30,733 nucleotides of DNA from Selaginella moellendorffii (lineage: Eukaryota > Plantae > Lycopodiophyta), in the NCBI RefSeq assembly GCF_000143415.4, contig NW_003314292.1, positions 1,816,221 to 1,846,953 of the forward strand. Direction: 5' to 3'. The notes below the pieces were generated by a model. It saw nothing but the letters and a program-made list of their open reading frames with translations, was not told the DNA's origin and ran no database searches. The position numbers and the translations under genes were made by a program. Shown piece by piece: positions 4,562 through 28,812 of this stretch (positions are counted from its first letter, which is position 1; every line of letters starts with the position of its first letter).

Positions 4562-4911
4562 CTAGTCGCCCTCAAAAACCCCCACCTCTTCCTCGAATCT
4601 CAGCAACCTGCCTTCGTACTCTGCTGGGATTGGATAACCCGCTGCATGCAACGCCTCTCTTGCCTCCGGCACCACAAGCATCTGCATCTTGCCACGAATG
4701 GCCTCGTCCGGCTCGGAGATTGCATACATGCCTCGTGACCCCCTAAGCACCTTCTCAAGGCTGGTGCCTCTCAGCCCAAACTCGTTGCCATAGTACGTGA
4801 TAATAGCATCTTTGGAGAATTGATAGATAGGTCCGCCACACAAAAGTCATGGAGTGGATCGCAATCCGAGCATGAAAAGAACAAGGCTGGAAAGCAAAAC
4901 AATGCTGCCAT
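4562..4911 (-). pseudogene. Truncated germin-like N-terminus joined out of frame to an unrelated coding-like fragment
   Basis: ATG at 4911 gives MAALFCFPALFFSCSDCDPLHDFCVADLSINSPK (germin box A, DPLxDFCVADL), with a stop at 4771-4773. A different frame (about 4820-4562) reads KDAIITYYGNEFG...EEEVGVFEGD*. Confidence 0.65.
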
Positions 4912-8395: not shown

Positions 8396-9855
8396 TCTGG
8401 TGATGCCAAGGTGGCAAAACCACATACAGCTGCAAATGCCCAGAAAGGGCAAAATTCCATGGTATCTGGGCATGCCAAGCCCAGACTTGCCAAGAATCAG
8501 TGCGTTCGCTACTTGGAGATGGGTCACTGGGCTTGAGATTGCATTGCTCCAAAGCTTGTCAAGCGATTAGCTACAATGGCAAAAGCCAACCTATTTAAGG
8601 GTGATGGAATTGTTACAGCAAATGAGGCTGTTGAGGAGCTCTACAACACAGAGGCAATTACAGCACCAAGTAAGTGGCTTCTAAACTCTAGTTGTACTAA
8701 TCTTTGGGCAATAAGAAGAGTCTTTTTAAGTGTTATCAATTGAGCATTGGAAAACATGGTATTTATTTAGGTGACAATACCACTATCCCTGTGGAAGGCA
8801 TTGGGCAATTTAGGCTCTCACTTTATCATGAGAGAATCATGGCATTTGGTGGTGCCATGCATGTCTCCATCTTGCAATGAAACTTAATGTCCGTTGCCAA
8901 GATATGTAATCAAAATGTAGTGGTAGTCTTTGATGCAAAGGGAGTCTCTTTGGTTGACTCTAGCGACTTTCACATACTTGGCACACAATTGCTTCATGGG
9001 CCACGCATTAGGGACTTGTATGAGATTACTATTGCCAACCAGGTTCAAGCCTTTCAAATTGTGGAGGCAGATTCTCGTGTAGAGCTTTGGCATAAAAGAC
9101 TTGGTCATGTCCATTACAAATCTCTTTAATAGATGAAATCCTAAGATATTGTTACTGGATATTTACATTTTGTGAAGCTTGCGTTTTAGGGAAGCATTAC
9201 TGCTGGAATTTCTCGCCAAGCAAGCACCAAGCAATTGAACTTGTGGACTTGGTCCATTCTAATCTTTGCAGCCTCATGGATGTGCCAAGTCACGATAGTG
9301 CAAGATATTTCATCACATTTATTAATGGCTATAGCCGTCGAATATGCATCCACTTCTTGATGTATAAGAGTGATGCAGTTGCTGCCTTTCAAACGTACAA
9401 GACTTACATTGAAAATCTCCTTGATCGAAAGATAAAAGCTATTTAAGTTGACAATGGTGGTGAATACCTCAACAATGAGCTTTAGGGCATCTATCGTGAT
9501 ATAGGTATATGATTGCAAGCCACAACCTGCTACACCCCCCAGAAAAATAGTGTTGCAAAAAGGAAGAATCGCATTCTTATCAATGCTGCTCATGCTTTGT
9601 TAGCTGATGCACATCTTGACAAGATGTTTTGGCAAGAGGCTATAGCCACAACAATGCATGTCCAAAATCACCTTGCCACAGTTGCTTTGGATGGAAAAAC
9701 CCTTGAGGCATTTTGGATAGGTTTTACTCTTAATGTGTCCCACTTTCGGGTCTTTGGTTGTGCAACATATGCATATACCTTTGATCAACTTTGGAAAAGC
9801 TACATCCCAAAAGTAAAAAATTCATCTTCTTGGGATATGCACAGGATGACACCAT

Positions 9856-11152
9856 TGTAAGCCACAAATTTTTCCTTTCCAATTTGCCAGCTTACCTCAT
9901 CTATCCGACCAATACTGCCTTGGCTTTTGCTAAGTTCCCTCGCCAAGGTTCCCACTTATGGTACCAGCTCTTACTTGGTCCTACTTGGTTTTAGCTACTC
10001 ACTACACAAGCAACAGAGCGTTAGCCATCCATCCACAAATTCCCAAATCTCTCTCAATCCCCTTCCCCGGGTTAAACTAGATTTAAGGTTCAGCTACACT
10101 CCCCGCAGGCACAAGCAACCAAGCACACCAAGCCTCCAGGTTTTTAACATCCTTTGGTACCACAAGACTTGATCATGGGACCCTCTAAATCCCAAGTCTT
10201 GAGTGCAACACATGCTTCGGGATGCCGGGGCGAAACACCATGGCCTAACGGCTTGGTATGGGTACCTCTACCCCCCCCCCCCACTTCCATCCCAAAAGGA
10301 AGGACCAGGCCCCTAGGAAGGGCAAGGACCAATGAGCCACAAGGAACTCAAATGGGGCACCACTCCACATGAGCTGGGAGCACTGTAGTCAGTTCCCCTT
10401 TCGGGAGTGGGAGTTGCTCTTGAGCACTTCCTTGGGTGGCCCCTCCAGTACCACCCGAGTCCATGCTCACTCCCACCCAAGGCCCCTCGGGCCTCAATCT
10501 CAACTTCAAGTCAGTTTGGAAGCGCTACTGGAGAGTTCCTTCAAAACTAGTTCCTAGACCTCACTATCCCTACTANNNNNNNNNNNNNNNNNNNNNNNNN
10601 NNNNNNNNNNNNNNNNNNNNNNNNNNNNNNNNNNNNNNNNNNNNNNNNNNNNNNNNNNNNNNNNNNNNNNNNNNNNNNCACCCTGTTGGGAGACACACGC
10701 TTTGGGCTTTGGGCTAATACAGGTATACTAATACCTGTATCAATATTAGTATACAGGTCAATACTAATACAGACCTGTATTAGTACTTGGACTCGGTCTC
10801 GAACTCAATCTCGGACTCGATCTCGAACCCGACTTCGGACTCGGTCTTGGACTCGATCTCGGACTCGATCTTGGACCCAATCTCGGACTCGACTTCGGAC
10901 TCGACCTCGGACTCGGTCTTGGACCCAATCTCGGATCTCGGACTCTGTCTCGAACTTGGTCTCAAACTTGGTCTTGAACTCGGTCTCTGAGTCGGCCTCG
11001 GCCTCGATCCCGGACTCTATCTTGAACTCGGTCTCAAAGTTGGTCTTGGACTCGATCTCAGACTCGGTCCCATCCGATGAACTCTTTGTCATTTCGGTCA
11101 AGCTTTTGGGGATCTTTTAGCCTACGACACTTTGGGGAGTTGGTTCCTTACA
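9856..11152. mobile_element. Nested LTR-type insertion within the copia integrase C-terminal region
   Basis: Termini TGTAAG...CTTACA with a perfect TSD ACCAT (9851-9855, 11153-11157). Removing it restores FIFLGYAQDDTIRRKTYKLWD...VSTDIMF. Contains an N gap. Confidence 0.85.
10787..11070. repeat. 12-bp minisatellite (GACTCGATCTCG/GACTCGGTCTTG)
   Basis: Tandem units related to the 7410 and 8278 arrays, preceded by a short TAATACAG/CTGTATTA inverted-repeat cluster (10715-10786). Confidence 0.85.
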
Positions 11153-13441
11153 ACCATTAGGAGAAAAACTTACAAGTTGTGGGATTTTGCATCTCACAAG
11201 GCTCTTGTAAGCACAGACATCATGTTCAACAAAGATGACTCAAGATCCTTCTTTCATTATTGAGACTCGACTTGTTCCTTTGATCCCACTTATGGGAGAT
11301 GGTCCACTCTTACCTCCACCTCAAGATCCTATTCATGAGTTGCCACTAGAGATTCCATTGGGGAATCCTCCACTTCTAGACAGTTGATGCTCCTCTAGTC
11401 GAGGATAGGCCTGGAACACCTCCACCACTTTGTCGACATCATGGCATGCCTGATCCAATGCTAGTTCTTGATCACCCCTGGGAACATCGGCCCTCATTGA
11501 AAGTCCAGGAAAATGCTGAAGCAGATGCTGCAGAGCTTGATAACTTTTGTGGCCTTGTTGACATCGGCATCCCCATGACCTATGATGAGGCTGTCTCACA
11601 TCTTGGATGGAAGCCATTGTGGAAGAAGTTGCTTCCATTTGGGTTAATGGAACTTATGTTCTAGTTGATTCAGCGCCACTGGGACAACGTGTTTTGGATC
11701 CAAAATGGAGTTTTTCCAAAAAGTATGGGAAAGATGGTCAGGTTATACATTATAAGGCATGGTTGGTTGTTTGCGGTTTTTGCCAAGTCCATGGCCTTGA
11801 CTACAATGAAACATTCTCACTGGTTGTAAAAATGGCTAGCATCCATACCCTTTTTGCACTTACGGCTGCTTGCAAATGGCAAGTCCACCATATGGATGTC
11901 AAAATTGTATTTTTGAATGGGGATTTGCAAGAGGACATCTATATGCATATACCTCCTGGTTTTGAGGATGATGTTGCCCCTTGTGGCCCTATATGGCAAT
12001 TGGGAAAGCTTTGTATAACAAGCTCCTGTATTTGGTATCAAAAATTTTATTACGTGCTCAGGGCTTTCATCACTACCATGTGTATGTGAATGGTCATGCT
12101 AAGAGCATGCTTATTGTGGCCCTCTATGTTGATGATTTGCTCATCATGGGTGATGACACCAATGCCATTGCTACTCTAAAAGCTGCTCTCAACCAGCAAT
12201 TCCAAATGAAGGACCTTGGCCAAGTCTCCTACTTTCTTGGCTTTGAAGTCACCCGCAATCCTGAGTTTGGTGGCTATATGCTTAGCCAACGACGTAAAGT
12301 CAAAGTCTTACTGGATCCATTTGGTATGCGTGATTGCCATCCCGTCAAGACCCCAATAGTTGTTGGTGCTATTGACCTCACAATTGAACAATTTGGTGAG
12401 CCTCTACCCACTAGGACTCCCTATCAACATCTCATTGGTTACCTCACATATTTGGCCTTGATGACTCGCTCTAATATCACATATGCAACTTGCCTTGAGT
12501 CAATACAACACATCACTAACCACTATATATTGGCAAGCTGCCAAGCATATCGTGAGATACCTCTAGGGCACTATGGACTACAGCATTACTTATTCAGGGG
12601 GTGATGCATCATTGATATGCTATATAGATGCTAGTTTTGCCAACAACAAAGGCCATCACTCTACTTCTAGCATTTGACTTTCCTTCTCAGGAGGTGCCAT
12701 ATGGGCCTCCAAGTGACAATCTGTGGTGGCACTTTCTAGTGCAGAAGTAGAGTACATTGCACTCACTACTAGTAGTAGGGACGTGGTCTGGGCTCGAGGG
12801 TTACTTGCTGAGCTGGGATGTGCACAAGCTGGCCCCACTACCTCTTGGTGTGACAACCGAAGTAGCATTGCCATGTCCAAGAACCCTGTCCACCATGCTT
12901 GCCTGAAGCACATTGAAGTCCAATTTCACTACGTGCATGAGTTGGTTGACGGTGGCACCCTGGCCATCCAACATCTCAGGACACAGGACATGCCAGCCAA
13001 CCTTCTCACCAAGCCATTGCTCCTACACGACAGATTTGGTTTGGTGAGTGGCTTTAGTTTGGGGGGGAGTGTTACAACACACTTTGCCATGTAGACATTA
13101 GGGTTTTCCTATTCTGTCGGTGCGCTTTGATCAGCCCTGTGTATGGAGTCCCAGAAAGTCTCGACGAAGGCTGGAGTGATACTGGTGCCCGAGGGGCCCA
13201 GGCTGGGGTCAGCAGGAGTGAGCAAGCCGCTGAAGACGAAGTCATCAATCGTCACGTTGGCATACGGCTTGTAGGGATACTTGTTGAGCTGCAGATAGTC
13301 GAGGTCCACCACACAAAAGTCCCGGACAGTATCTGGATCGGAAGTCAAAACTTGTAGAGTAGACATAGACGCATACAAGACTGCAAAACAAAACAAGAAC
13401 GTTGCCATATGGTTATGTCGCTGGATTTGGAGGGGATCAAA

Positions 13442-14490
13442 CTACATACCTTTGCAAGGTCCAAGGTCTAGAATATAATGCAGCTTCGAAAAACATATGT
13501 GCTGCCACGTTGCTCCCAACTTTAGCAAGTGGATGATAGCATGCAAACGTTGTAAAATCTTTTTTGCTTTCTCATTGGCCTTTAACTTCTGCCTCGCCGC
13601 AAAGAGGCCAAGGATCTCTTGGTGAGTATGCCTGGAGTTGCATGGGCAACATTTCTTAAATAAACAAAAAGGAAGAAATCTTGAAGATGGTGTTGCAGCA
13701 TTGATTGAAACCGCAAAGGATGGAACAATTATTGATTGTTGCTGTGTGACTTGCTTGATTTTCTCATATGAGGCTTGAGCATTCTTCTTGGACTTGATTT
13801 TGTTGGCATTGTTGCTGCTACTCCTCCATCCAAAGCAGCTGATGAGCTTGTTGGAACTGAGATCCTGTTGATTGTCCTTCATCTCCACAGCAAGAACTTG
13901 ACCCATGGGTTTCCAAATTACATATTTTTTATATCCCGGCTTTGTATAAAACGTTTCGTGAAAACCAAACAAATGAGTCCTCTACATGCAAACATGACTA
14001 ACATATCTTGAATGTTGTCCCTGTCCTGGAGATCACTGCGCACGGCTGCGAGAACCTCAAGTTCTAGGAAAGGCATCCAACATTTAAGATATCTTGGTAC
14101 AGTTTTGGTCAAAATGAGTCGTTGTTGCTTGACTGCGCATGAAAAAATGACCTCTGAATCAAGAAGCGAGTGAATCATCTACTACCAGTCAATGGACTTC
14201 TATGATGATACCATAACCTCATTGTTGTAAGATTGAGAGCTGTTCCAAAAAAGCTTGAGATACCTGTTGCAAGACCGAACTTAAACCAAAACACTTTCTC
14301 ATACCCAATTGCTCTCCATTACGAGCACTTGCCAGCATGCATTAGCCGTTGCTTTCGTCAAAAAGCTCACAGCTGGGTTGGACTCAGTCTGCAAAGAAGA
14401 GCCTTAGCGCTTATGTAGACTTGGCACGTTCACTAGTTCTTGCTAGCGAGTGTGGCTTCCCGTAGATGCTACCAAGTAATTCTTCCTTCT
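13442..14490 (-). pseudogene. Decayed coding region, possibly F-box/F-box-associated
   Basis: Weak motifs only, in different frames: EELLGSIYGKPHSLAR, FACRGLICL, YVIWKP. Includes a 176-aa ORF at 13442-13972. Confidence 0.25.
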
Positions 14491-14531
14491 ATCACTTTTG
14501 ACTTGGTGATGACATGAGAACTCGCTTCTGG

Positions 14532-15180
14532 GGCGAAGAACAAAAGAAGCTGGACGTGCAAGTCTTCACCAAAGCACTGTCCAGCAGTAAGGTTCTTTTA
14601 TCTCTTCCTCTTTGTGGCAGGTACTGCATGGTTTTTGATCCCCTCGATGGTATAGATTGCAGCATAAACGGTGAGAAAATGGTGGATTAAAAGATGGAAA
14701 GTCAGGTGTTGTCAGTGATGTCTTACACTGGTGGATACTGCTTATATGGAACCTTAAGCAGCTATTTCCTTCTTTTGGCTTGAGTTTAGAGCATGTTGAA
14801 ATCCTTATTGGCTTGTTTTGAGTATAATGTTTTGCAGTGGGATGATTGAGATTGCTAAGTTTCTTACGGGCAAAGTCTCTGGAGGGTTTGTATGATTAGA
14901 AATAACTGAATATGTTTCTTTTCTATTTCATACCGTATGGTGGCAGATGTTCACAAGACTTCACTCTACGGTGGCTATCCTGCTGATAAAAAAAAGTCCA
15001 TTTCCAGAGTTTCGTTTTCTCCTTTCACCATCTGCAGCCTTTTGTTCAAGGTTTTAAATCAAGCAGGCACGTAAGAACTCTTTTCTTTCGTACATCTATT
15101 ATTTCTTCTCTTGATTTACAGGCATTTGACATTGTTCGAATTTGGAAGCTTTGAAGACGTTGAAGAGATCAAAGCTCTTA
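14532..15180 (+). pseudogene. Cytosolic fructose-1,6-bisphosphatase pseudogene
   Basis: Collinear motifs: GEEQKKLDV/VFTKALSSS (14532), YCMVFDPLDG/IDC (14622), GYCLYG, MVADVHKTSLYGG/YPADKKSP (14937), FGSFEDVEEIKAL (15141). Intron remnants are present. Not in the ORF track. Confidence 0.88.
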
Positions 15181-18100
15181 GGTTCCTGCTGGATATCTTT
15201 ACAATTTGATAACGTCAAGCAAAGGGGCATCTTTTGAAAAAAACAAGAAAGAGGCTTAGGGCAATGTATATATATTCTAAAGCTTTATATGTATGTATAT
15301 ATGTATGTATATATATACATGTATTACCTTGCCTAAATAATATATTAATTATAATATTATAGTATATAAACCATCCATTTGGGACCAAGCCCATATGTAA
15401 TGTGTGGGTCAAAATGTATGGCTACAATGTTATATACTAATATTGTATAATTAATCTAATAATTATCAGATTACTTTCAATTCAAACCACTCGCTCCTGT
15501 ATATAAGCTAGGGTCAATTGAATATATATATTTTATATTCCATTCTATATTCCATGGACTCATATTAAAGGGGAACTTTAATTGTCCCTAAAGAGTGTTT
15601 GGATTTGGGTTTTTGGTTCAGATGTAACTTTTACATTGTCTAGATTTCACTTTTCTTATAATTTTTTAATTTCTTCTCTTTTGTAGCTTTTATCCTTTCA
15701 TTCATTTTTATGGTAGAGCAACAATTTCCTTCTCCTCCTTTTTGTAATTTCTTGATACTATGTAGTTGCAATTGAACAATCAAATTTGGTTAATGACGGC
15801 ATTTATGATATGTGGTATAGCTTCTGCTCTTACTGCCAATCCCCATATGCAGCCTGCTGCCAATAGCACTTTTAAATGAAGAAGTACTAAAGAAAAAGCA
15901 ATATAAATATTTAACTTTTGTTAAAATAGTAGTAAAACATAATAAAAATAATAATTATAGATATATATTTTAGCATGGAAGGAAGAGTCAAATTGAAAAC
16001 ATGGTTAAATATTATACACAAAATCATAAGTAAAAATAATGTTCATTCTATATTGATAAGAAGTAAATTTTTCACTAAATCTCATAGAGAACATAAAAAA
16101 TTTAGATGCAACAGCACTAGCTCAAAGAGGAATAAGAAATACTCATCCATGAGGATTGTGAGGTGTCCTCCTAGCTGTCCCAAGATATGTTGCGCTCAAA
16201 TTGGAGTTCCATGCACCTGAGGAGTATAGTGATGGATCATATCAAATGTAAGCTCTTGGAAGATGAGGATAGAATCAACAAGGTTTGGTCTCAAGAGGGC
16301 ATTTCAAACCTCTACAAAAAAGATGGCATGGAAGAGTCATTTATAGAGTCATACTTGGTTTTGTTAGGGTTTAGGGTTTATTAGCGGCCATTCTCACGAT
16401 GGAGTGATCACTAGAATTCATGGTCAACGAAGTGAGTGACAAGCATTGCTGCTATGCTATCATTTGTACCAACATTCTCCTACTCACTAGCCATAGATCT
16501 TAGGGGTGTTTAGCCTTCCAGGCAAGATACATGGTGGCTTACATCTATTCCAAAGGCAGGCTCATAGGGATCTTTCCCAATGACGATGAAGTTGCGAGAT
16601 TGGGAATGTCAACCATGAGCATGTCGTGATCCAAGCTCAACCTTTTCTGCTTGACAATGTGATTCAAAACAAGAAAAAATAGAAGAACTTCTTGAAACCA
16701 ATAACTATTCAATTTCAAGTAAGCATTTGCGTTTTTCATCTTTCTCTCAGTCATATCAAATTTTGGATTATCATCCTCCAGTCACTCATGCGATAGGACC
16801 ATTATCCACATCCTCCCTCACCTTCTTAGTGGTAGTATTTCAACATCACTGCCTTCAACCCAGCAAGGCTTGAAGGATCCAAGATCCCATTTTGCCATGA
16901 TGGATCAAGAGTCTTGTGTCCAACGATCACTACCTTAATTTCTTTTTTCAACCATGTGGACTCTAGAAGAATATCTTTGATGACTTTATTGAAAATGACA
17001 AGGTAATTAAATTAGGTTGTTTCATAATAGACTATTTATATTATGATTGTGTATGTGAGAATAACATTGTTGGCAACAAAGTGAGTTGTTACACAATATT
17101 CATAAATAAATATATAGTAATTAAAATATTTTTAAAAAAAATTGAAATTTTTATTACAAAATAGTCGTTCAATAACATAATATGATGTCTCATTCTTGAC
17201 CTGTTTTAATTTTTGAGGATGCTATGTGTCATTAGAAACCCCATAAATTCCATCTATAACAACCAAATATGAAATAAAATTTATAAACCTAAACATATCC
17301 TCATTTATAATATAATTAATATAAAATAATTATTAAAAAAGTATAAATTAAAAGAGTTACAAGGAAAATTACTTATAAAATGACCTATAGGACAATTTTC
17401 TTTGCTATATATATATATATTAACTAATTTATTTATTTATAAAGTTTTTAAAAATAATTTTCAATAATAAATTTATTAAGAAAAATAAATATTGGTAGCA
17501 TATATTATATTTTATATATATATAAAACTATTATTCTTTAATATAAATTTGTTAAATTATTCTAGAAAATCTACAATCATTTTTAAAATGTGTAAACTAT
17601 AAGGAACATATAATACTCTTACACTTACTTTTTTTATCTTTATATTTAATTTATCTTCCCACTAGAATGAAACTAATTTTGTATCTATTAATGTTAGGAA
17701 AACTAAGTTTTACATGTTTAATTATAAAAACAAAACTAAATATATTTTAAAAAAATTCATTGTGAAATTTAGTTTTAAGGGATTTCAATTTAGTTTTTCT
17801 AGAATTTTACATTTTATATATGAAATTAAATGGCACTTTTATACTTTGATTACATAGAAAAATTTACAGTTAAAAACTTTTCAATATGGTTAGATAAAAC
17901 TTTTTATGAATAGATGATTGAACGAAGTAAATTAATAGTAAATATTTTGTGAATTTTTTAACTTAAATTTACTTTTAGTTATTTTATTAATATAATTCTT
18001 CTTTTGTCAACTATAGGAGAAAAGATGAACTAAAAAGTACTTTTTAATTATGTTTTAAATATATTTTTATATTTAGTTATTTTTGTAAAATTCTAATTCT

Positions 18101-18199
18101 TCAAAAGCTTAGCTCTATATCTAATAACAATGCAAGTATAATAAGTTGATTATCCTTTTAACAAAGAACTAAGCTATATTAATTTAAATTATTATATCT

Positions 18200-19900
18200 G
18201 TAAAAAAACAAGTAATTAGCACTTTCTCTTTTTGACCCAAAATCAATAGAAATTTTAAAACATATTGTCAAAATTCCAAGAAGAAAAAAATGTGGTTATG
18301 ACAAAAAATGAAAAAAGGATAACTGAATTTATCCTCTATTTTTTATGTGAAAAAATAATTTGCATTTTATATGATATCAAAGTTAATAGATGGGTTTTAT
18401 TTGAGAAAAAACAACTCCCAAGAATACAACCAAGAAGTAAAAATATAGGAGCATGAAGTGACAATAATATAATTCTAAAGCATCTAACATCCCACTAATA
18501 TATAAACCAAAGTTAAATATAATTTAATGCTATTTCAACATACCTAATGTAAATATATAAATATTCCACCAACTAATATGGTATGGAGGTTAGGTTTATA
18601 CCTAAGCGGAATATAGAACAAATATAAACATCCCTAACAAGAAGCTAAACAATATTTCTAAACCTAATTTACCCCCTTATATGAAAGCATACTTTAACCC
18701 CAATTCTAAGAGCTAGTCTCCAGGATAATTATGAAAATTTGTTAAATATAGAATGGTGTTAGATTGTGAATCTAAAAATAATATCATCATGTTCAAAACA
18801 ATCTCTACATTCCATAAATATGCCTTATTAGTAGATCTAGACACTTTCTATAAATAGTTAATAGGATTAAAAAAAGATTAGCATATAGCAAGAGTCTCTT
18901 AGTAGATATAGTAAGTTATTATGTAGTGATATTAAAGTACTAAAGCTCAATATACAAGAGTTTTTATCATTAACTAATGAAAGATATAACAAAATAGAAA
19001 TTCTTTATTAGGTTATGTTTATTTACGTAATAACACAAAAAAATTCTATCTATATACTCGTCCAGTTTAAATACACTTGAATTGCCAGTTAACTCCACTA
19101 ATACAAAAGGGATTAATAAAGGGTTTAACATTACCAATCCCCTGCCTAAAGAAGAATATTTGGAATGACTTGTTAACAAAAAGTTTTTGATACCCATAAT
19201 TTTATTTATGACAATTAAAGGTTTTAAGATATATGTAAAAAGTTTACAATAGCCTTCAAAAAATATAACAATGAATAAGTAGTCAAGAAAATTTCTCACT
19301 AATATGAGAATCTATTTAAAGCACTATTGAATTAGATATCACTTATCACAATATAGTCAAAAGGACCTTCAACTATTATAAAATAGGCATATACATTTGC
19401 TGTTAGAGAGAGTTATGTATTTTACCACAAAAATTATAAAAGTACTTACCCAACAAGATTTATCACTAATTGATTGTCATGCTGCTGTATCCTTTAGAGT
19501 TTGCAAGATCTATTATACTTTTAAGACCATAACTTTAAAAGGTATATTAATTATTATTATTTATATTAAAGCATATCCAAAAAGTATCAAGCAAACCATC
19601 ATAATATATTTAACTTTAAATTCTAGTAATTTCTCCACAAGATAGATGCTGTGCAAATAATGTGCTATATTATATTAAGGTTATTTTATGAAATGAAGGG
19701 TGTTCTTTGCTTCTTAATTGTATATCTTTACATTATTTTTATTTGAGGTCTGTCTGGTATGATTTGTGTTGTGCAATCTTCTAATTTTTCTTTTCCTTTT
19801 GTTTTTATGGTGAAGGGTGGACAATTCTCTGCATCATGTAAAAATGTAAGGCTGTGGTATAAAGCAGAATTATGAGCAGATTGTCCTCCTAGCAAAAAAT
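18200..19900 (-). mobile_element. Highly decayed AT-rich LINE-like relic
   Basis: Faint, correctly ordered RT-like motifs: YITLSNS (about 19410), SLGRGLVMLNPLLIPFVLVE (about 19130) and a GG.LGL-like stretch (about 18670). Confidence 0.3.
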
Positions 19901-20203
19901 CAAGTTTCATAATTTTAAATGATCATATCTCAAATGGTAATGGGGTTGGTTATTTTTTCTAGATGTAGACTCTTCAGGCTAATAGTAATGGATATCATTT
20001 TATCAAATGTAAAACAAAAGTAGTAGTACTACTGACCCAAAACCAACAACAGGACTTGGAGCATACTGTGAGAATTTTAAGAAGAAAGAAGAGTGGTCAA
20101 CTATAAATCTTGATGAGTTCATTGAAAATAATCAGGGTAAATTAAAGTGGGTGGTTGTATAATTACATAATATTTTAATTTGTTTTTTTATGTTTCTAGG
20201 AGA

Positions 20204-20479
20204 TTAGATGGTGGTGCATGCCAGAACGTTGGTGGAGTCTGTCTGCTGGCAGCAAGCAGGAGTCCCTCCGCACTTGCTACCCACATTTACCGCACAATTT
20301 GCAGCATTGACAGTCACAAGTGTACCAGGAGGTGCAGCAGGGAAATTCGAGCAGCAGTAAGAAGTGGAATCATTTCCACAAGTTTGGTTGCCCTGTCCCA
20401 AGGCAGGATTGAGAAAGAGAGCAGCACTCAGGGCCAAGAATGTGGCAATAAGCTTAATTGAAGAAGAAGAAAAAGCCAT
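20204..20479 (-). CDS. Small secreted 8-cysteine protein with hydrophobin-like spacing (91 aa)
   Basis: ATG at 20479; predicted signal peptide MAFSSSSIKLIATFLALSAALFLNPALG. Mature part is C-X7-CC-X18-C-X7-C-X5-CC-X10-C-X3. Intronless and GC-richer than its AT-rich flank. Confidence 0.8.
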   Translation of the reverse strand: MAFSSSSIKLIATFLALSAALFLNPALGQGNQTCGNDSTSYCCSNFPAAPPGTLVTVNAANCAVNVGSKCGGTPACCQQTDSTNVLACTTI

Positions 20480-21096
20480 GATTGTAAGAGCAGCTGAATG
20501 AGAATGGGTTTGTCTCTTTGGACGCTTAGAATTTATTGAGTTAAGATTGTCCTTCTTCAAGGGTGTAAGTTGTATGATCGTCCTTTGTCATCNNNNNNNN
20601 NNNNNNNNNNNNNNNNNNNNNNNNNNNNNNNNNNNNNNNNNNNNNNNNNNNNNNNNNNNNNNNNNNNNNNNNNNNNNNNNNNNNNNNNNNNNNNNNNNNN
20701 NNNNNNNNNNNNNNNNNNNNNNNNNNNNNNNNNNNNNNNNNNNNNNNNNNNNNNNNNNNNNNNNNNNNNNNNNNNNNNNNNNNNNNNNNNNNNNNNNNNN
20801 NNNNNNNNNNNNNNNNNNNNNNNNNNNNNNNNNNNNNNNNNNNNNNNNNNNNNNNNNNNNNNNNNNNNNNNNNNNNNNNNNNNNNNNNNNNNNNNNNNNN
20901 NNNNNNNNNNNNNNNNNNNNNNNNNNNNNNNNNNNNNNNNNNNNNNNNNNNNNNNNNNNNNNNNNNNNNNNNNNNNNNNGTTAGAGCATGATCTCCAGAA
21001 AACGAGTGAAGTGCAGCCAGTGAGAAATGCAGCTGGACACGAATCAACCTCCATTTTTGAGCCTGATATAATAGTATAGTGTTCTATATAATATTA

Positions 21097-21099
<3 letters not shown>

Positions 21100-21172
<73 letters not shown>
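21100..21172. repeat. (TA)n microsatellite
   Basis: About 36 uninterrupted TA/AT units. Confidence 0.97.
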
Positions 21173-21178
<6 letters not shown>

Positions 21179-21512
21179 TTATATCAATATTATTTAATAT
21201 ATTTATAATTAAAAAAATTAAACACTATTTAAATGTGTCCTATGTTTTAAAACTTTTATCAATGGGAATAAATTAGATTTTCCTATTCCATTTAAATCTC
21301 TAAAATTCTCTACATATTGTAATATGCTTCTAACATAAATGATTATATCTCAAATGATAACATACAAATAAGTGAAATGTGGTTAAAGTATATATGTTGA
21401 TGACTTCATTCAAAACGTTTTAACTATGCGTGTTTATAGGACTAGGGTTACAGAGGGATGGAGAAAGGTATGGGGTTAGCGGGCCTAGCTCTTGCACATT
21501 CCCTCCCATGTC

Positions 21513-23900
21513 ATGGCTGTGGTGCCGGCGGCTCGCAGTTCGCCGTTTTTCTCGAGAGAAAGGAGAGGCTATGGCGCTTCCAGCACCAGCGGCGAAGGAA
21601 TGCAAGGAAGGACTTTCACAAAAACAGGCAGCAGTGGCTCAGAGGATCAAAAAATTCTCAGCTGGAACAAGATCAAACAAGAGGAGGACAAGAGGAAAAA
21701 GGAGATGGTGCTGGAGCTCATTGCTGCATTGAAGGCGGCGAGCGGCTCAAGAGCGATCGAGAGGGGAAGGCAGCTCCATGCCGCAGCGATTGAGAGTGGC
21801 AACGGTTCCAACTTCTACGTTGCGAGCTCTCTCGTGAGCATGTACGCGAGATGTGGCTGCATGGGCGAGGCTCGCTCGGTGTTTGATGCCATGGAGCACC
21901 ACGATGTGGTTCTCTGGACAGCGCTCATGCTCGGCTACTCCAAGAACGGCCAGGGAGAAGTGACTTTGGAGCTCTTCTCGCGGATGCTGCTCGTCGCAAG
22001 GCCGAATTCTCAGACGTTTCTGGCTGTGCTCAAGGGCCTTTCGAGCTTGGCTGCAAGGGAGGAAGGCAGGAGATTCGGTGGAAAGGTGGTGAAGACAAGG
22101 ACTCTGGAAAGAGTCATGGCTGTCCACTTGCAAGCCGAGGGATTTGGATGCGAGCTGGATAACTTTGTGGCGAGCTCGCTGGTGGACATTTATGCCAGGT
22201 GTGGGAGCATGAGGGATGCTCGCAGAGTTTTCGATCGAATGCCGAGCCACAACTTGGTGGCCTGGACGGCATTGATCCTGGGCTATGCTACGAACGGGGA
22301 GAATGAGGTTGGCCTCAGGCTCTTCGCTCGGGTGCTTGGCGAAGAAGGACGCAGGACAGATTCGCAGGCTTTTGTTGCTGCGCTCAAAGCTTGCACGGGG
22401 CTGACGGACAGAGAGGTGGCAAACGACTCAGGTGTAAAGATCCAGTGCTTGGAGAAAGGCATGGCTGTGCATCGTGAAGCTGCCAAGAGTGGAGTTGCAA
22501 CGGAGATGTTCGTGGGAAGTGTCCTGGTGGATACATACGCGAAGTGCGGAAGCATGGAGGACTCCCGCATCGTATTTGAGAAGATGGTGGCTCAGGACGT
22601 GGTCTCGTGGACCGCTCTCCTGTTTGGCTACGCGCAGAATGGCGAGAGCGAGCTGACCCTTGGGATGTTTGAGAGAATGAAAGCCTCGGGGTGTGCACCG
22701 AACGCTCAGACGTTCGTGGCAGTTCTTCACGCGTGCACGAACTTGGCTTTGCGAGAGGACGGCATTGAAGAGGACGGCAAAGTCCTCAAGGTGAAAGCTC
22801 TGGAGAAAGGCATGGCTGTTCATCGGGAAGCTTTCAAGGGCGGGTTTGAGCCGGACATCTGTGTGAGCAGCACGCTGGTGGATATGTACTCCAAGTGCGG
22901 CAGCGTCCTCCAGGCTCGCCGGGTGTTTGACAGGATGAAGCGCCACGATGTGGTGTCATGGACAGCGCTCATACTCGGCTGTGCTCAAAACGACGAGGGA
23001 GATATGGCACTGGAGCTCTTCACAAAGATGAGGCTTGAAGAGAAACGTTGCCAGCCCGACGATCAGACGTTCGTTGCCGCGCTGAAGGCCTGCTCCACAG
23101 TTGCATCGCTCGAGTTTGGAAAGAAAATCCATGCAGATATATGCCGGTGTGGACTCGAGGCTGGCAGGCTTGTCACGAACTCGGTGGTGGATTTCTACGG
23201 CAAGTGCGGGAGCATGGTCGTGGCTCACCAGGTTTTCGATTCCGCTAGAACAAGAGCCCGGGATATAGTCTCGTGGAACTCGCTCATCACAGGCTACAGC
23301 CGCCACGGTGAAACCGACGCCGTCCTCGAGCTCTTTGCAAGGATGGTGGAAGAAGGCTTCCAACCGGATGGCATCACCACACTGGCGGTCTTGAACGCGT
23401 GCTGCCATGCCGGGCTGGTTGAAAGAGGGAGGAAGCTCTTCCAGGAGATGTGCTCCCGGAAGGCTGCAAGCGTGACTATGGAGCACTACCACGTCGTGGT
23501 GGACATGCTAGGCCGGGCAAACAAACTCCAGGAGGCGGTGGAGATGGCGGACTCGATGCCTTTCGCAGCGAATGTGGTGACATGGACCATCGTGCTGAGC
23601 TCGTGTCACAAGTGGAAGAGCTTGGAATTTGGAAGGCTGGCGTTTGAGGCACTGGTGAAGCTGGATGAGAAGCAGGCTGCTACTTACGTTCTCATGGCCA
23701 ACATCTATGGAAGCTTGGGCATGGTTGAGGAAAAAGCTAGAGTTCATGCGATGAGCAAGAGGATTGGTGCGTGGAAGAGGGGATCAGTGGTAGTCAATCT
23801 CGATTCGTTTGTCAATTGTGGTGATCATCCTCAAAAGGAAGAGGAGAAGAACTATTATCAAACTTGTGACAGACATACTTGTAAAATAGAACTTCTATAA
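21513..23900 (+). CDS. PLS-class pentatricopeptide repeat protein with E extension, no DYW domain; probable organellar RNA-editing factor
   Basis: Intronless ORF, first ATG at 21513. Repeated SSLVxMYxKCG / DVVSWTAL / PxxQTFVAxLxAC motifs; C-terminal EHYHVVVDMLGRA...ATYVLMANIY...; the E+ region is truncated. Confidence 0.93.
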   Translation: MAVVPAARSSPFFSRERRGYGASSTSGEGMQGRTFTKTGSSGSEDQKILSWNKIKQEEDKRKKEMVLELIAALKAASGSRAIERGRQLHAAAIESGNGSNFYVASSLVSMYARCGCMGEARSVFDAMEHHDVVLWTALMLGYSKNGQGEVTLELFSRMLLVARPNSQTFLAVLKGLSSLAAREEGRRFGGKVVKTRTLERVMAVHLQAEGFGCELDNFVASSLVDIYARCGSMRDARRVFDRMPSHNLVAWTALILGYATNGENEVGLRLFARVLGEEGRRTDSQAFVAALKACTGLTDREVANDSGVKIQCLEKGMAVHREAAKSGVATEMFVGSVLVDTYAKCGSMEDSRIVFEKMVAQDVVSWTALLFGYAQNGESELTLGMFERMKASGCAPNAQTFVAVLHACTNLALREDGIEEDGKVLKVKALEKGMAVHREAFKGGFEPDICVSSTLVDMYSKCGSVLQARRVFDRMKRHDVVSWTALILGCAQNDEGDMALELFTKMRLEEKRCQPDDQTFVAALKACSTVASLEFGKKIHADICRCGLEAGRLVTNSVVDFYGKCGSMVVAHQVFDSARTRARDIVSWNSLITGYSRHGETDAVLELFARMVEEGFQPDGITTLAVLNACCHAGLVERGRKLFQEMCSRKAASVTMEHYHVVVDMLGRANKLQEAVEMADSMPFAANVVTWTIVLSSCHKWKSLEFGRLAFEALVKLDEKQAATYVLMANIYGSLGMVEEKARVHAMSKRIGAWKRGSVVVNLDSFVNCGDHPQKEEEKNYYQTCDRHTCKIELL

Positions 23901-24165: not shown

Positions 24166-24407
24166 ATGGCTTCCTCCACTCAGTTTGTTCTTGCATTCTT
24201 TCTAGTGGCAATAAGCCTTATCAACGTTGAATCCCATGATTCAGAAAAATGTAGCGGGGGTACTATTGTCTGTTGCTCCAATATCGATTCTTCTAAAGAT
24301 CTTGTTGATATCGATCTTTAGGATTCAAAAACTTCGCCTGCATACTCAATCAGGTTAAGTGTGAAAACACTAAAATCTGCTGCAAGGAGAAATGCAAAGC
24401 TATTTAG
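24166..24407 (+). pseudogene. Second hydrophobin-like secreted 8-Cys gene with a 1-nt frameshift
   Basis: MASSTQFVLAFFLVAISLINVESHDSEKCSGGTIVCCSNIDSSKDLVDIDL* (stop 24319-24321) continues in another frame as GFKNFACILNQVKCENTKICCKEKCKAI* (to 24407). Restored pattern: C-X6-CC-X21-C-X6-C-X5-CC-X3-C. Confidence 0.75.
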
Positions 24408-24627
24408 GCCAATCAAGCACCAAGAAACAAAAGCATAAATAAATTCCTCTTAAATCAATAAATCGACAAAGCTTTCTTTCTCAATGTTTTTGACCTAGTG
24501 CGTTTCTACTGAATTTTTTTTATCAACTATTTTAAACAAAGCTGCATTTATCGTTCATTACATAATGAGTCTGAACTCGCAGATATCCAAAAACTCTTAG
24601 CTTCTAGTCAATGATCATAATTTCCCT

Positions 24628-27601
24628 TCAGCTAGATACTCCGCCACCGCCGCCACCACCACCACAACCACCGCCGCCACCACCACCACCTCCTCCGCCA
24701 CACCCGCCACCACCTCCTCCGCCACACCCGCCACCACCTCCTCCGCCACACCCGCCACCACCTCCTCCGCCACCTCCTCCACAACCTCCGCCTCCGCCTC
24801 CGCCACCTCCTGCTCCACCACATCCCCCACCTCCACTGATGCCACACCCGCCTCCACCAGCACCACCTCCGCCACAATACGATCCACCTCCATCATACCA
24901 GCACTGGCCATCACCACCGAAACCATCACCACCACCAACATCATCGCCACCGTCACCACCGTCGCCCCCGTGCTCTTCCCCGTGCTCTCCCCCGTGCTCT
25001 CCCCCGCCCTCTCCGCCACCGCCTCTGTCCTTGCGGCGACGGCGATCAACTGTCACAGCACCTGGTCAAGCAGCAATGTTCTTAGAATTTGCGTGCAAAG
25101 AAACTTGTTTCTCACCCCAATGATCTTGTTCTTCTTCTGAGACCATCACTCGTTTCCTCGTATTCGTCCACGAAGGAATGGCTTTGCCGAGCATATCCGA
25201 CACGGACATGCTTATGGTTGCCGATAAAAGAAGCACAAGCAGCACATCCTCATTGCGATCAATCTGAGACAAATCATATCACAAAATTGGAGCTAAATTT
25301 CGATTAAAGTCTACCTGCATGCCACCAGACCGCCAGTTGAAAAGAGCTGTCGCCTTGCCTTGAGGAGCGTCTCTTGTGAATCTTACCATTGTCACAAACC
25401 ACGCTTCCTGTCGCTCGGATGCACCAGGAACAGCAAATTCCAGGTGACGACCCGAGAAGAGCATGATCTACAATCAAGTTTTCCAGAGAATCAGCCACTA
25501 TATCAGAGAATCTGTACCACTATATATGCAGACTAACTCACCGGACAGTCGTGGGATTTCATTTCAACGCGGAGCTGTGGTTTCATGTTCCAGTGCTTAT
25601 CCTTGACATCTCTGTTAACAGTTAAAATAGCCTTCCCGTTCATTAGAGACCATCTCCTAGACACTGAAGATGGTTTCTCTAGTTGCCATGCAGATCCTAG
25701 AATTTCACCTGAGAAAACAAAGCAACACTATAAACCTTTTGCAAAACATGTCCAGAAGATGCTCATACCATTTACGGAGCCAGTGTTGTAAGAACCGTCG
25801 TATGTCCACCCTCCTTTGTGAACATGGATAACTTTATCGGTGTCGAGAATGCTCCTTAGCAAAAGCCCCCCACCCTTGTATCTAAAGCAAAAGTTGCCAC
25901 ATTAGTTCTAGAAAAAGTGGCTCAATTTGCAAACCTGCAACGGACGACGAAGGATTCGTTTCTGGTGTGATCGAAAACATTCCTTGTTATCCACATGCCT
26001 TCTCTGTGACTGTGGAGGCTGTGAGTGGCACAGTCGTCTCCCGTGTCTCTCACTCTCACGCTTCTGAAGAGATAAGGCGCAGTGACTGGAGGAGTAACGG
26101 AGATGTAAACCAGCACCGACACTTCTCGGTCCTTCTTTGTCTCCAGCAATGGAAACCAGCCGCTGAGTGATTGCGTTTCCGAGCGGATGACAGTTTTCCA
26201 TGGAATCAGGAGCAGGCCCACGGTTTTGGATATCAAAAAGCGCTTCTGTCGAACTGCGAGCACCAGCCCTTCGGTGGAGAGTTCAGCTGTTATGGTTGAG
26301 ACTACGCTCAGATGAGAGGAAGCCTTCCCTCGTTGGCTCTCGAGATTCAGATACTTTTGATGGTTTAACGAGGTTATCACGTAGTAGATGGTCCTATCGT
26401 CTGGCAAACCTCTGGTACCTCTTACGGAGAGATGAACCTGCATAAATCGAATAGAATCGGATCAGACGAGATTGACAATAAGACTGCGAACTCCAATACC
26501 TGAATAGTCTTTCGCTCAGCCAAGTCATAATCGTTTTTACTAGCGAGCCTGGCGAGTTTGGCTGGATCATAAGCAGGTGTTTTGGGAACGGATGCTGGTG
26601 GCTCCCCTCTGTACATGCACCCTGCTTTCTCGTATGGAAGGCCATACGTGTCTTCCCACATAGATCGAGTCTTTGTGAATCCATTGTCCAGTTTTCCTCC
26701 GGAATCTCGGTTGCTATCTGTGTCGTCATGCTCGAAGATCCTTCCCAGTACCTGTGTGAGATCGTTGTGGTAGCTCACAGGGTGAAGCTGATGTGTATGC
26801 CATATTAAATCGATGTCGTAAGAGGGAACGAAAAATGTTGACGTGCCAGACGTGCGTATGAGATGGAGAAACGCCTTGTAACGTGCAACAGCAACTACCA
26901 AGAAGCTCTCGCCCAGGTAATGCGGCTCAGAAACCTGCATACTCAAAGTTAATTTGCTTCCAAGGAAAGATCATCACTTGCCTGATAGTAGAAACTTTTC
27001 TGCCTGAGAGCTGCTTCTGCCAAGTCGTAAAAGATATTGGTTGGTCTTTCGGTATATCGTCTTGTTAAGTCTCCACCGTAAATGTCAAGAGTGTATGGTT
27101 CGTCTGGAAAATTCGAAGCCCATGTACTGGCGCTTTGTTGGAGATCATTTCTGTGCCTCGCCAAAGAAGGTCCCTCCACAATTTTACCGAACAATCTCTT
27201 ACAGTCGTCAGCATATTGAACCTAGTCAGACACGTAACTTTGGTAAATTGAAGTGGACAGATAATGGAATAGCCACACTTACAGGATTCAAGCGATGGCA
27301 ATGCCATATCCAGTCGCAGTCGAGTGGCGGGAAAAAATTCCCAGAAGAATTTGCTAACAGCGGGAGGCAGCAGTACTGGTACCTAGAATCCAAGAAGAAA
27401 TCAGCAAACTAGATCAAACAAGTAAATATCTCACCTCTCAATTGCCCTTTCCAGAACAGGCCTCTCAAACAGCTTGAAATTGGCATGTACCAGCGAAAGG
27501 AACTCCAACTGTGATTTTGCAGCTGCTACCACATCCAGAGAGAGCGTAATTTCTTGAGCCTTGCGCCATTCATTCACTTGATTCACGGAAAGCGAAGCCA
27601 T
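24628..27601 (-). CDS. Glycine-rich domain-containing protein (GRDP1/2-like, DUF1399), multi-exon
   Basis: EWRKAQEITLSLDVVAAAKSQLEFL, PPLDCDWIWHCHRLNP, RQKSFYYQ|VSEPHY, VPSYDIDLIWHTHQLHP, HDDTDSNR, GCMYRGEPP, KATALFNW, then a C-terminal GGGGC repeat tail ending in TGA at 24628-24630. Confidence 0.88.
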
Positions 27602-28812
27602 TGTTGTAGTCTGTGAGTCGAGCACACTGCTTGGTCTGCTTAAATAAGCGGGAAGAAGCTGCCGGCTTTGACTCTTCGAAGGATGCGTAGAGAGTTCGGA
27701 AATTCGATGTGTCTTAGAGCTTTTGGATGTTCAGGCTGGTTGACGGCGACGGCCAATGATCTCGCAATCCACGCGGGGCTTGTAGAGAGTTTCAAGATCA
27801 GTGTGTATCATTGACTGGCGTCGCAGGATCGTCGAACTTGCTTTTTTCGTCAAGTCGTCTTTACCAAGACTTTTTTTGTTACTGTGTCAAAGGATGTGCG
27901 TCCACGATAGCCTGAAACAAACATAAAAAAAAAAAAAAAAAATTCAGCAGGAGAAGTTTCGACTGTACTTTCAAGGGAAATCCACGTCCTTTTGGGCCAA
28001 GAGAAGCTCAAAACGAGGAACGAGAAGTACTCTTCCATGTCCTTTAACACTCGCTACTTCGTGCCTGGGTTGGAAAAAAGAAACGGCACAAAATTAGAGA
28101 GACTGTCCTCAGCGAAGATCTTTCCTTACCATGGAGGATGGATGGATACAACACATCCGACCTGTACATCGGGAGAAAGGCTATCGAAAATAGCGGTGAC
28201 AGCTTCAAAGGTCTCCAAAACNNNNNNNNNNNNNNNNNNNNNNNNNNNNNNNNNNNNNNNNNNNNNNNNNNNNNNNNNNNNNNNNNNNNNNNNNNNNNNN
28301 NNNNNNNNNNNNNNNNNNNNNNNNNNNNNNNNNNNNNNNNNNNNNNNNNNNNNNNNNNNNNNNNNNNNNNNNNNNNNNNNNNNNNNNNNNNNNNNNNNNN
28401 NNNNNNNNNNNNNNNNNNNNNNNNNNNNNNNNNNNNNNNNNNNNNNNNNNNNNNNNNNNNNNNNNNNNNNNNNNNNNNNNNNNNNNNNNNNNNNNNNNNN
28501 NNNNNNNNNNNNNNNNNNNNNNNNNNNNNNNNNNNNNNNNNNNNNNNNNNNNNNNNNNNNNNNNNNNNNNNNNNNNNNNNNNNNNNNNNNNNNNNNNNNN
28601 NNNNNCTATGTCTCGTTACCTCGGACGTGGTATCACTATCGATCGGATCAAGGCTAGAATCCACCCTGCAAGAGAATGATCGCTAGAAATGAAGAATAGA
28701 ATCACTGGAAATGCAGCTACCTCGTGCTTGCCTTGCACCCAACATCGTCGTCGTCGTCGTCGGCATCTGAGATTCCATCCTCCAGCTCCAGTGGCCGTCG
28801 CGGGCGCTTCAT
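27602..28812 (-). other. Upstream exon set of the GRDP locus (N-terminal extension or separate decayed gene)
   Basis: ATG at 28812 gives MKRPRRPLELEDGISDADDDDDDVGCKASTR|VDSSLDPIDSDTTSE, with a telo-box just upstream. Homologous to 390-1400. Frameshifted in 27640-27910; includes an N gap. Confidence 0.5.

Follow-up and report, generated by a model that had tools for sequence, protein, structure and literature searches.

The stretch of Selaginella moellendorffii DNA analysed here (30,733 nt, referred to below as the window) is the terminal 30.7 kb of scaffold GL377596.1 (1,846,953 bp; GCA_000143415.2). It carries a small intronless gene on the reverse strand, hyd1, which is flanked by fructose-1,6-bisphosphatase (FBPase)/copia sequence and by a PPR gene, and a decayed second gene of related type, hyd2. 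Additional copies of the same region were fetched via the cluster mates of the PPR protein, and are referred to as loci L002 and L004, both on GL377733.1, and L003, on GL377705.1. The GenBank record of GL377596.1 has no gene called over hyd1. The coordinates of all features are given in Table 1.

Table 1. Features of the hyd1 locus and of the intact hyd2 copy; positions are those of the window unless another locus is named.
Feature	Position	Strand	Remarks
hyd1, intronless CDS	20204..20479	-	91 codons + stop; = GL377596.1:1836424-1836699
hyd1 predicted signal peptide, residues 1-28 (MAFSSSSIKLIATFLALSAALFLNPALG)	20396..20479	-	leader judged by eye
hyd1 mature chain, 63 aa	20207..20395	-	C-X7-CC-X18-C-X7-C-X5-CC-X10-C-X3
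Minimal putative transcribed span of hyd1	20163..20492	-	short contigs, three runs guessed to be RNA
Contigs over hyd1 from runs guessed to be RNA	20163-20492 (depth 139), 20183-20482, 20199-20436		strand not given by contigs
Assembly gap, 387 N	20593..20979	.	begins 113 nt upstream of hyd1 start codon
PPR gene, intronless, PLS/E-type	21513..23900	+	anchors window to Selaginella and to duplicated units
Decayed hyd2 (type b)	24166..24404	+	three-frame translation; DNA alignment with L002, L003 and L004 copies
Intact hyd2, 87 aa	L004 12061-12324 = GL377733.1:172907-173170	+	C-X6-CC-X19-C-X8-C-X5-CC-X10-C-X3

The leader of hyd1, as read from the sequence, is of the n-h-c type (MAFSSSSIK / LIATFLALSAALFL / NPALG), with a lysine as its single basic residue, a 14-residue hydrophobic core and then A-L-G, after which cleavage is likely to occur. 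The mature chain has eight cysteines in the order C-CC-C-C-CC-C, those at positions 2/3 and 6/7 being adjacent, and the exact spacing that an earlier note on this DNA had given for an intact secreted-protein ORF was confirmed over the 91-aa product and its 63-aa chain. Both doublets are followed by hydrophilic residues (CC-SN and CC-QQ), five residues (GGTPA) separate Cys5 from Cys6, and the Cys7-Cys8 loop is formed by the ten residues QQTDSTNVLA. The chain is rather polar, with a GRAVY of -0.02, 40% of its residues being N, Q, S or T and 27% aliphatic or aromatic; the Cys3-Cys4 loop, described in the same note as partly aliphatic, is so to a modest degree (loop GRAVY 0.24). Base composition of the gene is GC 0.49 and GC3 0.45. 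When a deliberately loose form of the full eight-cysteine pattern was searched for in the six-frame translation, hyd1 was the single instance in the window, and the pattern was found in none of 400 block-shuffles of the window; the pattern is thus real and not a product of chance.

Hydrophobins are small (<= 20 kDa) secreted proteins with an N-terminal signal peptide (PMC3364958), a description that hyd1 fits with its 91 aa and a leader judged by eye. In class I members Cys5 and Cys6 are separated by five residues and each doublet is followed by hydrophilic residues (PMC3020181), and hyd1 has both of these traits. The closest known protein is EAS, a class I hydrophobin from Neurospora crassa (2fmc, PF22354), which like hyd1 is small and secreted, with the order C-CC-C-C-CC-C, a Cys5-Cys6 loop of five residues, polar residues after both doublets and an acidic pI of ~4.2. 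Outside the cysteines the two have the motifs YCC, PA..PG.L, V..A..C.V.V.GS.CG...CC and D.TN in common. However, hyd1 is encoded by a plant and its loops are shorter than those of EAS: 18 residues against 25 between Cys3 and Cys4, and 10 against 17 between Cys7 and Cys8, whilst the Cys4-Cys5 loop has seven residues in hyd1, nine in EAS and 16 in one Aspergillus class I example. It is also less hydrophobic, EAS having a GRAVY of 0.42 and 37% aliphatic or aromatic residues. Class I hydrophobins as a group are moderately to highly hydrophobic, expose a hydrophobic patch, and assemble at hydrophobic-hydrophilic interfaces into rodlet films that are amphipathic and acid-resistant. The amyloid-forming F72-I75 segment of EAS, which drives rodlet assembly (PMC4644811, PMC3364958), is missing from the Cys7-Cys8 loop of hyd1; a look-alike, TLVTVNAAN, stands before Cys4 instead.

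A Pfam search with hyd1 gave a single match, to the Eas hydrophobin family PF22354 (E 0.13-0.21, 12-13 bits); the comparison with hydrophobin HMMs proposed in the earlier note therefore does return an Eas match, but one that at best reaches 12.9 bits against a gathering threshold of 27 bits. There was no listed match between hyd1 itself and PF01185, the L002 allele of hyd1 scoring 9.9 bits (E 1.5) against this family, and no Pfam match to the class II family PF06766 or to plant LTP families. Among 177,635 PDB sequences the best match of hyd1 was EAS (E 0.011), and a three-row family profile matched EAS at E 0.0019, though the same profile matches an antibody heavy chain at E 0.007 by a chance match to 'GTLVTVSAAK', and E-values near 0.01 are therefore soft for a protein of this composition. 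The residues GTLVTVNAA (mature-chain residues 24-31) mimic the junction from J-region to CH1 of antibody heavy chains, and give spurious PDB matches with E-values of 0.007-1.

A direct comparison of the hyd1 mature chain with EAS found 23 of 57 positions identical (40%; pairwise BLASTP E 2e-6) and an hhalign probability of 85%. When only the non-cysteine residues were permuted, the Smith-Waterman score of 88 was reached once in one set of 5,000 shuffles and never in another 5,000 (mean 38, sd 8, z 6.3-6.6). As EAS was chosen from among the hydrophobins in the PDB, of which there are roughly a dozen, this corresponds to a p of ~0.002 after allowing for that choice, the number of hydrophobins being our estimate. 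The likeness to class I hydrophobins put forward in the earlier note thus goes beyond the cysteine skeleton, with one in 10,000 cysteine-fixed shuffles attaining the score against EAS.

The class II hydrophobins (PF06766; HFBI/HFBII, cerato-ulmin) have the same order of eight cysteines as hyd1 and, among the matches listed, are its top language-model neighbours, those neighbours that carry family names being fungal hydrophobin clusters with a weak score of 0.83. However, in one class II example Cys3-Cys4, Cys4-Cys5 and Cys5-Cys6 are separated by X11, X16 and X8, and class II doublets are followed by hydrophobic residues (PMC3020181), unlike the X18, X7 and X5 and the polar residues after the doublets of hyd1. 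In the classical class I family PF01185 (SC3 type, mainly Basidiomycota), hyd2 comes near the cut-off while hyd1 has no listed match.

Structure prediction was of limited help. The AlphaFold models of hyd1 are of low confidence (pLDDT 66.7 from the single sequence and 61.0 from a five-row alignment), and in both the chain is all-beta, with four to five strands, at both doublets and before Cys4 and Cys8. The class I arrangement is a small beta-barrel core with disulfides C1-C6, C2-C5, C3-C4 and C7-C8. Foldseek searches with these low-confidence models placed HFBI and EAS at E 2-7, with TM of 0.3-0.4 only; VIA-align of the poor model against 48,161 chains found nothing above Z 2.2, the entries of Foldseek's own list falling below Z 2, and a shape search of the ESM Atlas with the same poor model returned unrelated rows only. 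We do not count these outcomes against a hydrophobin fold.

The second sequence type, hyd2, is intact at L004. Its leader resembles that of hyd1, and the two have the cysteine skeleton and a C-x-x-I end in common, with 28% identity and a pairwise E of 9e-5. In cysteine-fixed shuffles hyd1 is nearer to EAS (z 6.6) than to hyd2 (z 2.4). Intact hyd2 instead covers the whole PF01185 'Fungal hydrophobin' profile (positions 1-79) at 21.6 bits, and its mature chain alone reaches 22.9 bits (E 1.4e-4), 0.1 bit short of the cut-off of 23. The top language-model neighbours of hyd2 are, among the matches listed, PF01185 clusters at 0.85, the top three of which share 171-178 features. GenBank places over this gene a 388-aa product on the opposite strand (L004 12075-13930), which is without any Pfam family and may be a wrong model. 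The L003 copy lies beside a gap; its C-terminal half matches PF01185 (E 0.0011) and has hydrophobins as its sole PDB matches, though these are weak, and the 45-aa fragment of L003, used for a feature search of the Atlas, gave no usable match.

The hyd2 copy in the window had been considered as a hidden second paralogue, but it is a pseudogene of a diverged type: a signal peptide and C-X6-CC are followed by a 10-nt deletion that shifts the frame, and then by C-X6-C-X5-CC-X3-C-KAI. The L002 copy (12639-12886) is in frame at the site of this deletion and has a separate 1-nt deletion of its own, while both broken copies have a Cys7-Cys8 loop that is 21 nt shorter than in intact hyd2. As the broken copies carry separate lesions, the family shows birth-and-death turnover. 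Selaginella has, then, a small unannotated family of secreted eight-cysteine proteins. It comprises a hyd1 and a hyd2 sequence type, the latter both intact and decayed.

The main alternative to a relationship with hydrophobins is that this family is a lineage-specific group of plant cysteine-rich peptides, with for example an antimicrobial or signalling role, that has converged on C-CC-C-C-CC-C. Such convergence would be in keeping with hydrophobin matches of hyd1 that all lie under curated thresholds, with poor models that find no fold match, with a polar chain of low hydropathy, and with an unrelated antibody matching at a similar E-value. It would also accord with the outcome of an exhaustive phmmer search of hyd1 against 1.84 billion representative proteins, in which no true relative was found at E <= 0.001 (the lone match, a 361-aa repeat protein, is not a relative). 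However, these missing relatives say little, since the Selaginella genes lack annotation and significance is out of reach for a 20-bit match in a database of 1.84 billion. The exact hyd1 protein is absent from a collection of ~15 billion predicted proteins. Other searches were equally unproductive: a word-index protein search with hyd1 scored no candidate, a metagenome scan with the alignment of hyd1 and EAS gave 111 pattern matches of which none was confirmed, and a protein search seeded with an EAS fragment recovered three Neurospora entries only, too few for a deep fungal alignment.

Against convergence, the similarity to EAS lies largely outside the cysteines (shuffle p ~1e-4, before allowing for the choice of EAS), and two divergent paralogues pick hydrophobin families only in Pfam, one of them at 22.9 of the required 23 bits over a whole profile. 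Nor does hyd1 fit the known plant motif. The plant eight-cysteine-motif proteins (nsLTP, 2S albumin, HyPRP) are, like hyd1, small and secreted with eight cysteines, which in the plant motif form four disulfides; that motif, C-C-CC-CXC-C-C, contains a single doublet together with a CXC, and its fold is helical. As the earlier note had argued, hyd1 differs in having two doublets and no CXC. It also has no Pfam LTP match, and its low-confidence models are all-beta. We therefore regard convergence as unlikely, and homology of the hyd1/hyd2 family with the fungal class I hydrophobins as the probable explanation of the sequence comparisons. Of the hydrophobin types, the EAS type (PF22354) is most likely the nearest to hyd1, and PF01185 the nearest to hyd2. 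As the gathering threshold was missed and the fold models are of low confidence, hyd1 should be called a hydrophobin-like protein of class I character and not a Pfam-grade member.

The genes occur in a repeated unit with the order hyd1 (-) / PPR (+) / hyd2 (+), which is found in the window, at two places on GL377733.1 (L002 and L004, 96-97% alike) and, in part, on GL377705.1 (L003). In copies where the region after hyd2 is seen, a proline-rich ORF and/or a GRDP-like gene follows. The former is represented in the window by a long proline-run ORF at 24611-25123 (+) (PPPPPPPQPPPP..., then SPPPS-like repeats), also present in L003 from ~12110, which may encode a wall protein similar to extensins or formins, or may be low-complexity DNA. 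Further intact copies of hyd1 lie at L002 3100-3372 and L004 1217-1489; their CDS are identical to each other; relative to that of the window, their leader lacks 3 nt in frame and two residues are replaced, K by E and A by V. Two 'CCSNFP' occurrences, at L002 ~19260 and L003 ~1600, were examined as third copies and proved on six-frame reading to be chance matches.

Across the three copies, 2 of 273 CDS sites are variable compared with 22 of 312 sites in the 3' flank (386 columns), which has in addition eight indels of 1, 1, 1, 2, 9, 15, 22 and 23 nt. The CDS thus varies ~10 times less than the flank (Fisher p = 8e-5), a difference that speaks for a constrained coding sequence, or else for gene conversion limited to the hyd1 CDS. 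The dN/dS between copies is uninformative, as there are two replacement and no silent changes.

Words of the stretch containing the gene are present in sequencing runs of six studies, and four of these runs were aligned to 15000-20592: one DNA run, and three which we guess to be RNA, their contigs giving neither strand nor transcript ends. In the DNA run, which has the same organism label, the contig over 20208-20586 is 98.7% alike and the flank contigs are 93-96% alike. At 15374-15934 and 18740-19113 the summed contig depth of this run rises to ~2,000, compared with 10-50 elsewhere, with many partial alignments; these intervals are dispersed repeats that flank hyd1 and have copies in L002 at 4599-4772 and 9348-9621. 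The three runs guessed to be RNA come from three studies with three organism labels, and each yields one short contig (240-330 nt) exactly over hyd1, with none from the AT-rich flank at 17618-20048; in one of them the depth over hyd1 is 139 compared with 63 in a neighbouring region whose contig passes into unlike sequence. These contigs are collinear with the genome, and hyd1 is therefore without an intron. Two of the three runs also cover 16517-16954, where the contigs pass into unlike sequence at 16517 as they would at an exon junction, which makes an RNA origin of the runs plausible. The coverage of 16517-16954 is suggestive of a spliced transcript that lies, without annotation, between FBPase and hyd1, although no convincing ORF was found in that interval. 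Taken as RNA, the contigs indicate that hyd1 is probably expressed.

These observations bear on the possibility that hyd1 is a chance or decaying ORF without function, a relic like its neighbouring hyd2 copy. The broken hyd2 copies in the window and L002, the lack of annotation and the non-synonymous nature of both substitutions between hyd1 copies could all be read in this way. However, hyd1 is intact in all three copies with nothing more disruptive than an in-frame indel, its CDS is ten times less variable than its 3' flank, and RNA-like runs have contigs that coincide exactly with it, at good depth, so that decay appears very improbable. We are accordingly confident, short of certainty, that hyd1 is a real, expressed nuclear gene of S. 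moellendorffii.

The surroundings of hyd1 are those of a plant genome. Runs of N are present in the window at 10576-10678, 20593-20979 and 28222-28605, and between the first two, over 10679-20592, the sequence is without N, so that hyd1 shares an unbroken 9.9 kb with a copia-type reverse transcriptase (RVT_2, Pfam E 2e-20) and an FBPase exon fragment (Pfam E 0.002), both upstream in the window. The earlier note had drawn attention to this gap-free stretch and to the plant sequence in it; the lack of N and the copia and FBPase matches were borne out, but its germin-like ORF at 13109-13408 has no Pfam match and is at most a putative germin. The PPR ORF (21513-23897, 2.4 kb) matches a 789-aa product on GL377596.1 with 100% identity across 99% of its length; this product begins six codons downstream of our 795-aa reading, for which an exact look-up gave no entry, and the next best relatives of the ORF all carry the name Selaginella moellendorffii. 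With this neighbour, and with hyd1 intact at three loci on two scaffolds, the placing of the gene in a plant genome holds.

The intergenic DNA around hyd1 (17000-21000) is very AT-rich, with a GC of 0.18-0.27 compared with 0.44-0.56 in neighbouring genes. Long (TA)n / (TATATA)n microsatellites stand beside the gap upstream of hyd1 (window 21079-21276; L002 3790-3900) and were probably its cause. Because this gap of 387 N starts 113 nt upstream of the ATG, the hyd1 promoter is hidden in the window; in L002 the corresponding interval measures 6.6 kb, and a TATAAG occurs there ~130 nt before the ATG. The proximity of the gap, and a GC3 that differs from that of the PPR gene (0.66), might be cited in favour of contamination by a fungus or of a chimeric join in the assembly. 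This reading is excluded in practice, since intact hyd1 occurs three times, on two Selaginella scaffolds, in an order relative to PPR genes that is conserved, and is further opposed by the 9.9 kb of contiguity with FBPase and copia sequence, by the presence of the stretch in runs of six studies, and by the intronless state of the gene within AT-rich, plant-like intergenic DNA.

If the family is homologous to the class I hydrophobins, the simplest origin would be an old gene transfer from a fungus into the Selaginella lineage. Transfer is suggested since hydrophobins are known as restricted to fungi and hyd1 is 40% identical to an ascomycete protein; on these comparisons we give it somewhat better than an even chance. 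Segmental duplication of the hyd1 / PPR / hyd2 unit would then have followed, with birth-and-death turnover of the family copies. The hyd1 protein would enter the secretory pathway, lose its 28-residue leader and fold into a small, beta-structured core that four disulfides hold together. By analogy with the class I hydrophobins, it may act extracellularly, as an amphipathic protein that adsorbs to or coats the wall, the cuticle or the surface of spores. That hyd1 is a true film or rodlet former is doubtful. Taken as a whole, the reading of hyd1 as an intact, probably expressed member of a family homologous to the class I hydrophobins is a good working explanation and in our opinion probably the right one.

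Hydrophobins are, to our knowledge, described in textbooks as unique to fungi, and a full-text search of the literature found no report of a hydrophobin in a plant. A bolder and distinctly speculative scenario, which we hold to be rather improbable, is that of a land plant with working hydrophobins: one or two fungal genes, EAS-like and SC3-like, would have been captured, multiplied together with the PPR segment and put to use in coating and wetting plant surfaces. If true, the surfaces concerned would be spores, ligule, cuticle or air spaces, and the rule that hydrophobins belong to fungi only would be broken. The absence of the family from the genome annotation and from the collection of 15 billion proteins indicates that surveys of predicted proteins can miss small intronless genes. 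A plant-made member would be added to a class of proteins employed in coatings and emulsions, and the hydrophobin-like family of this lycophyte, conserved and apparently expressed, would be a clear candidate for a gene passed from a fungus to an early-diverging vascular plant.
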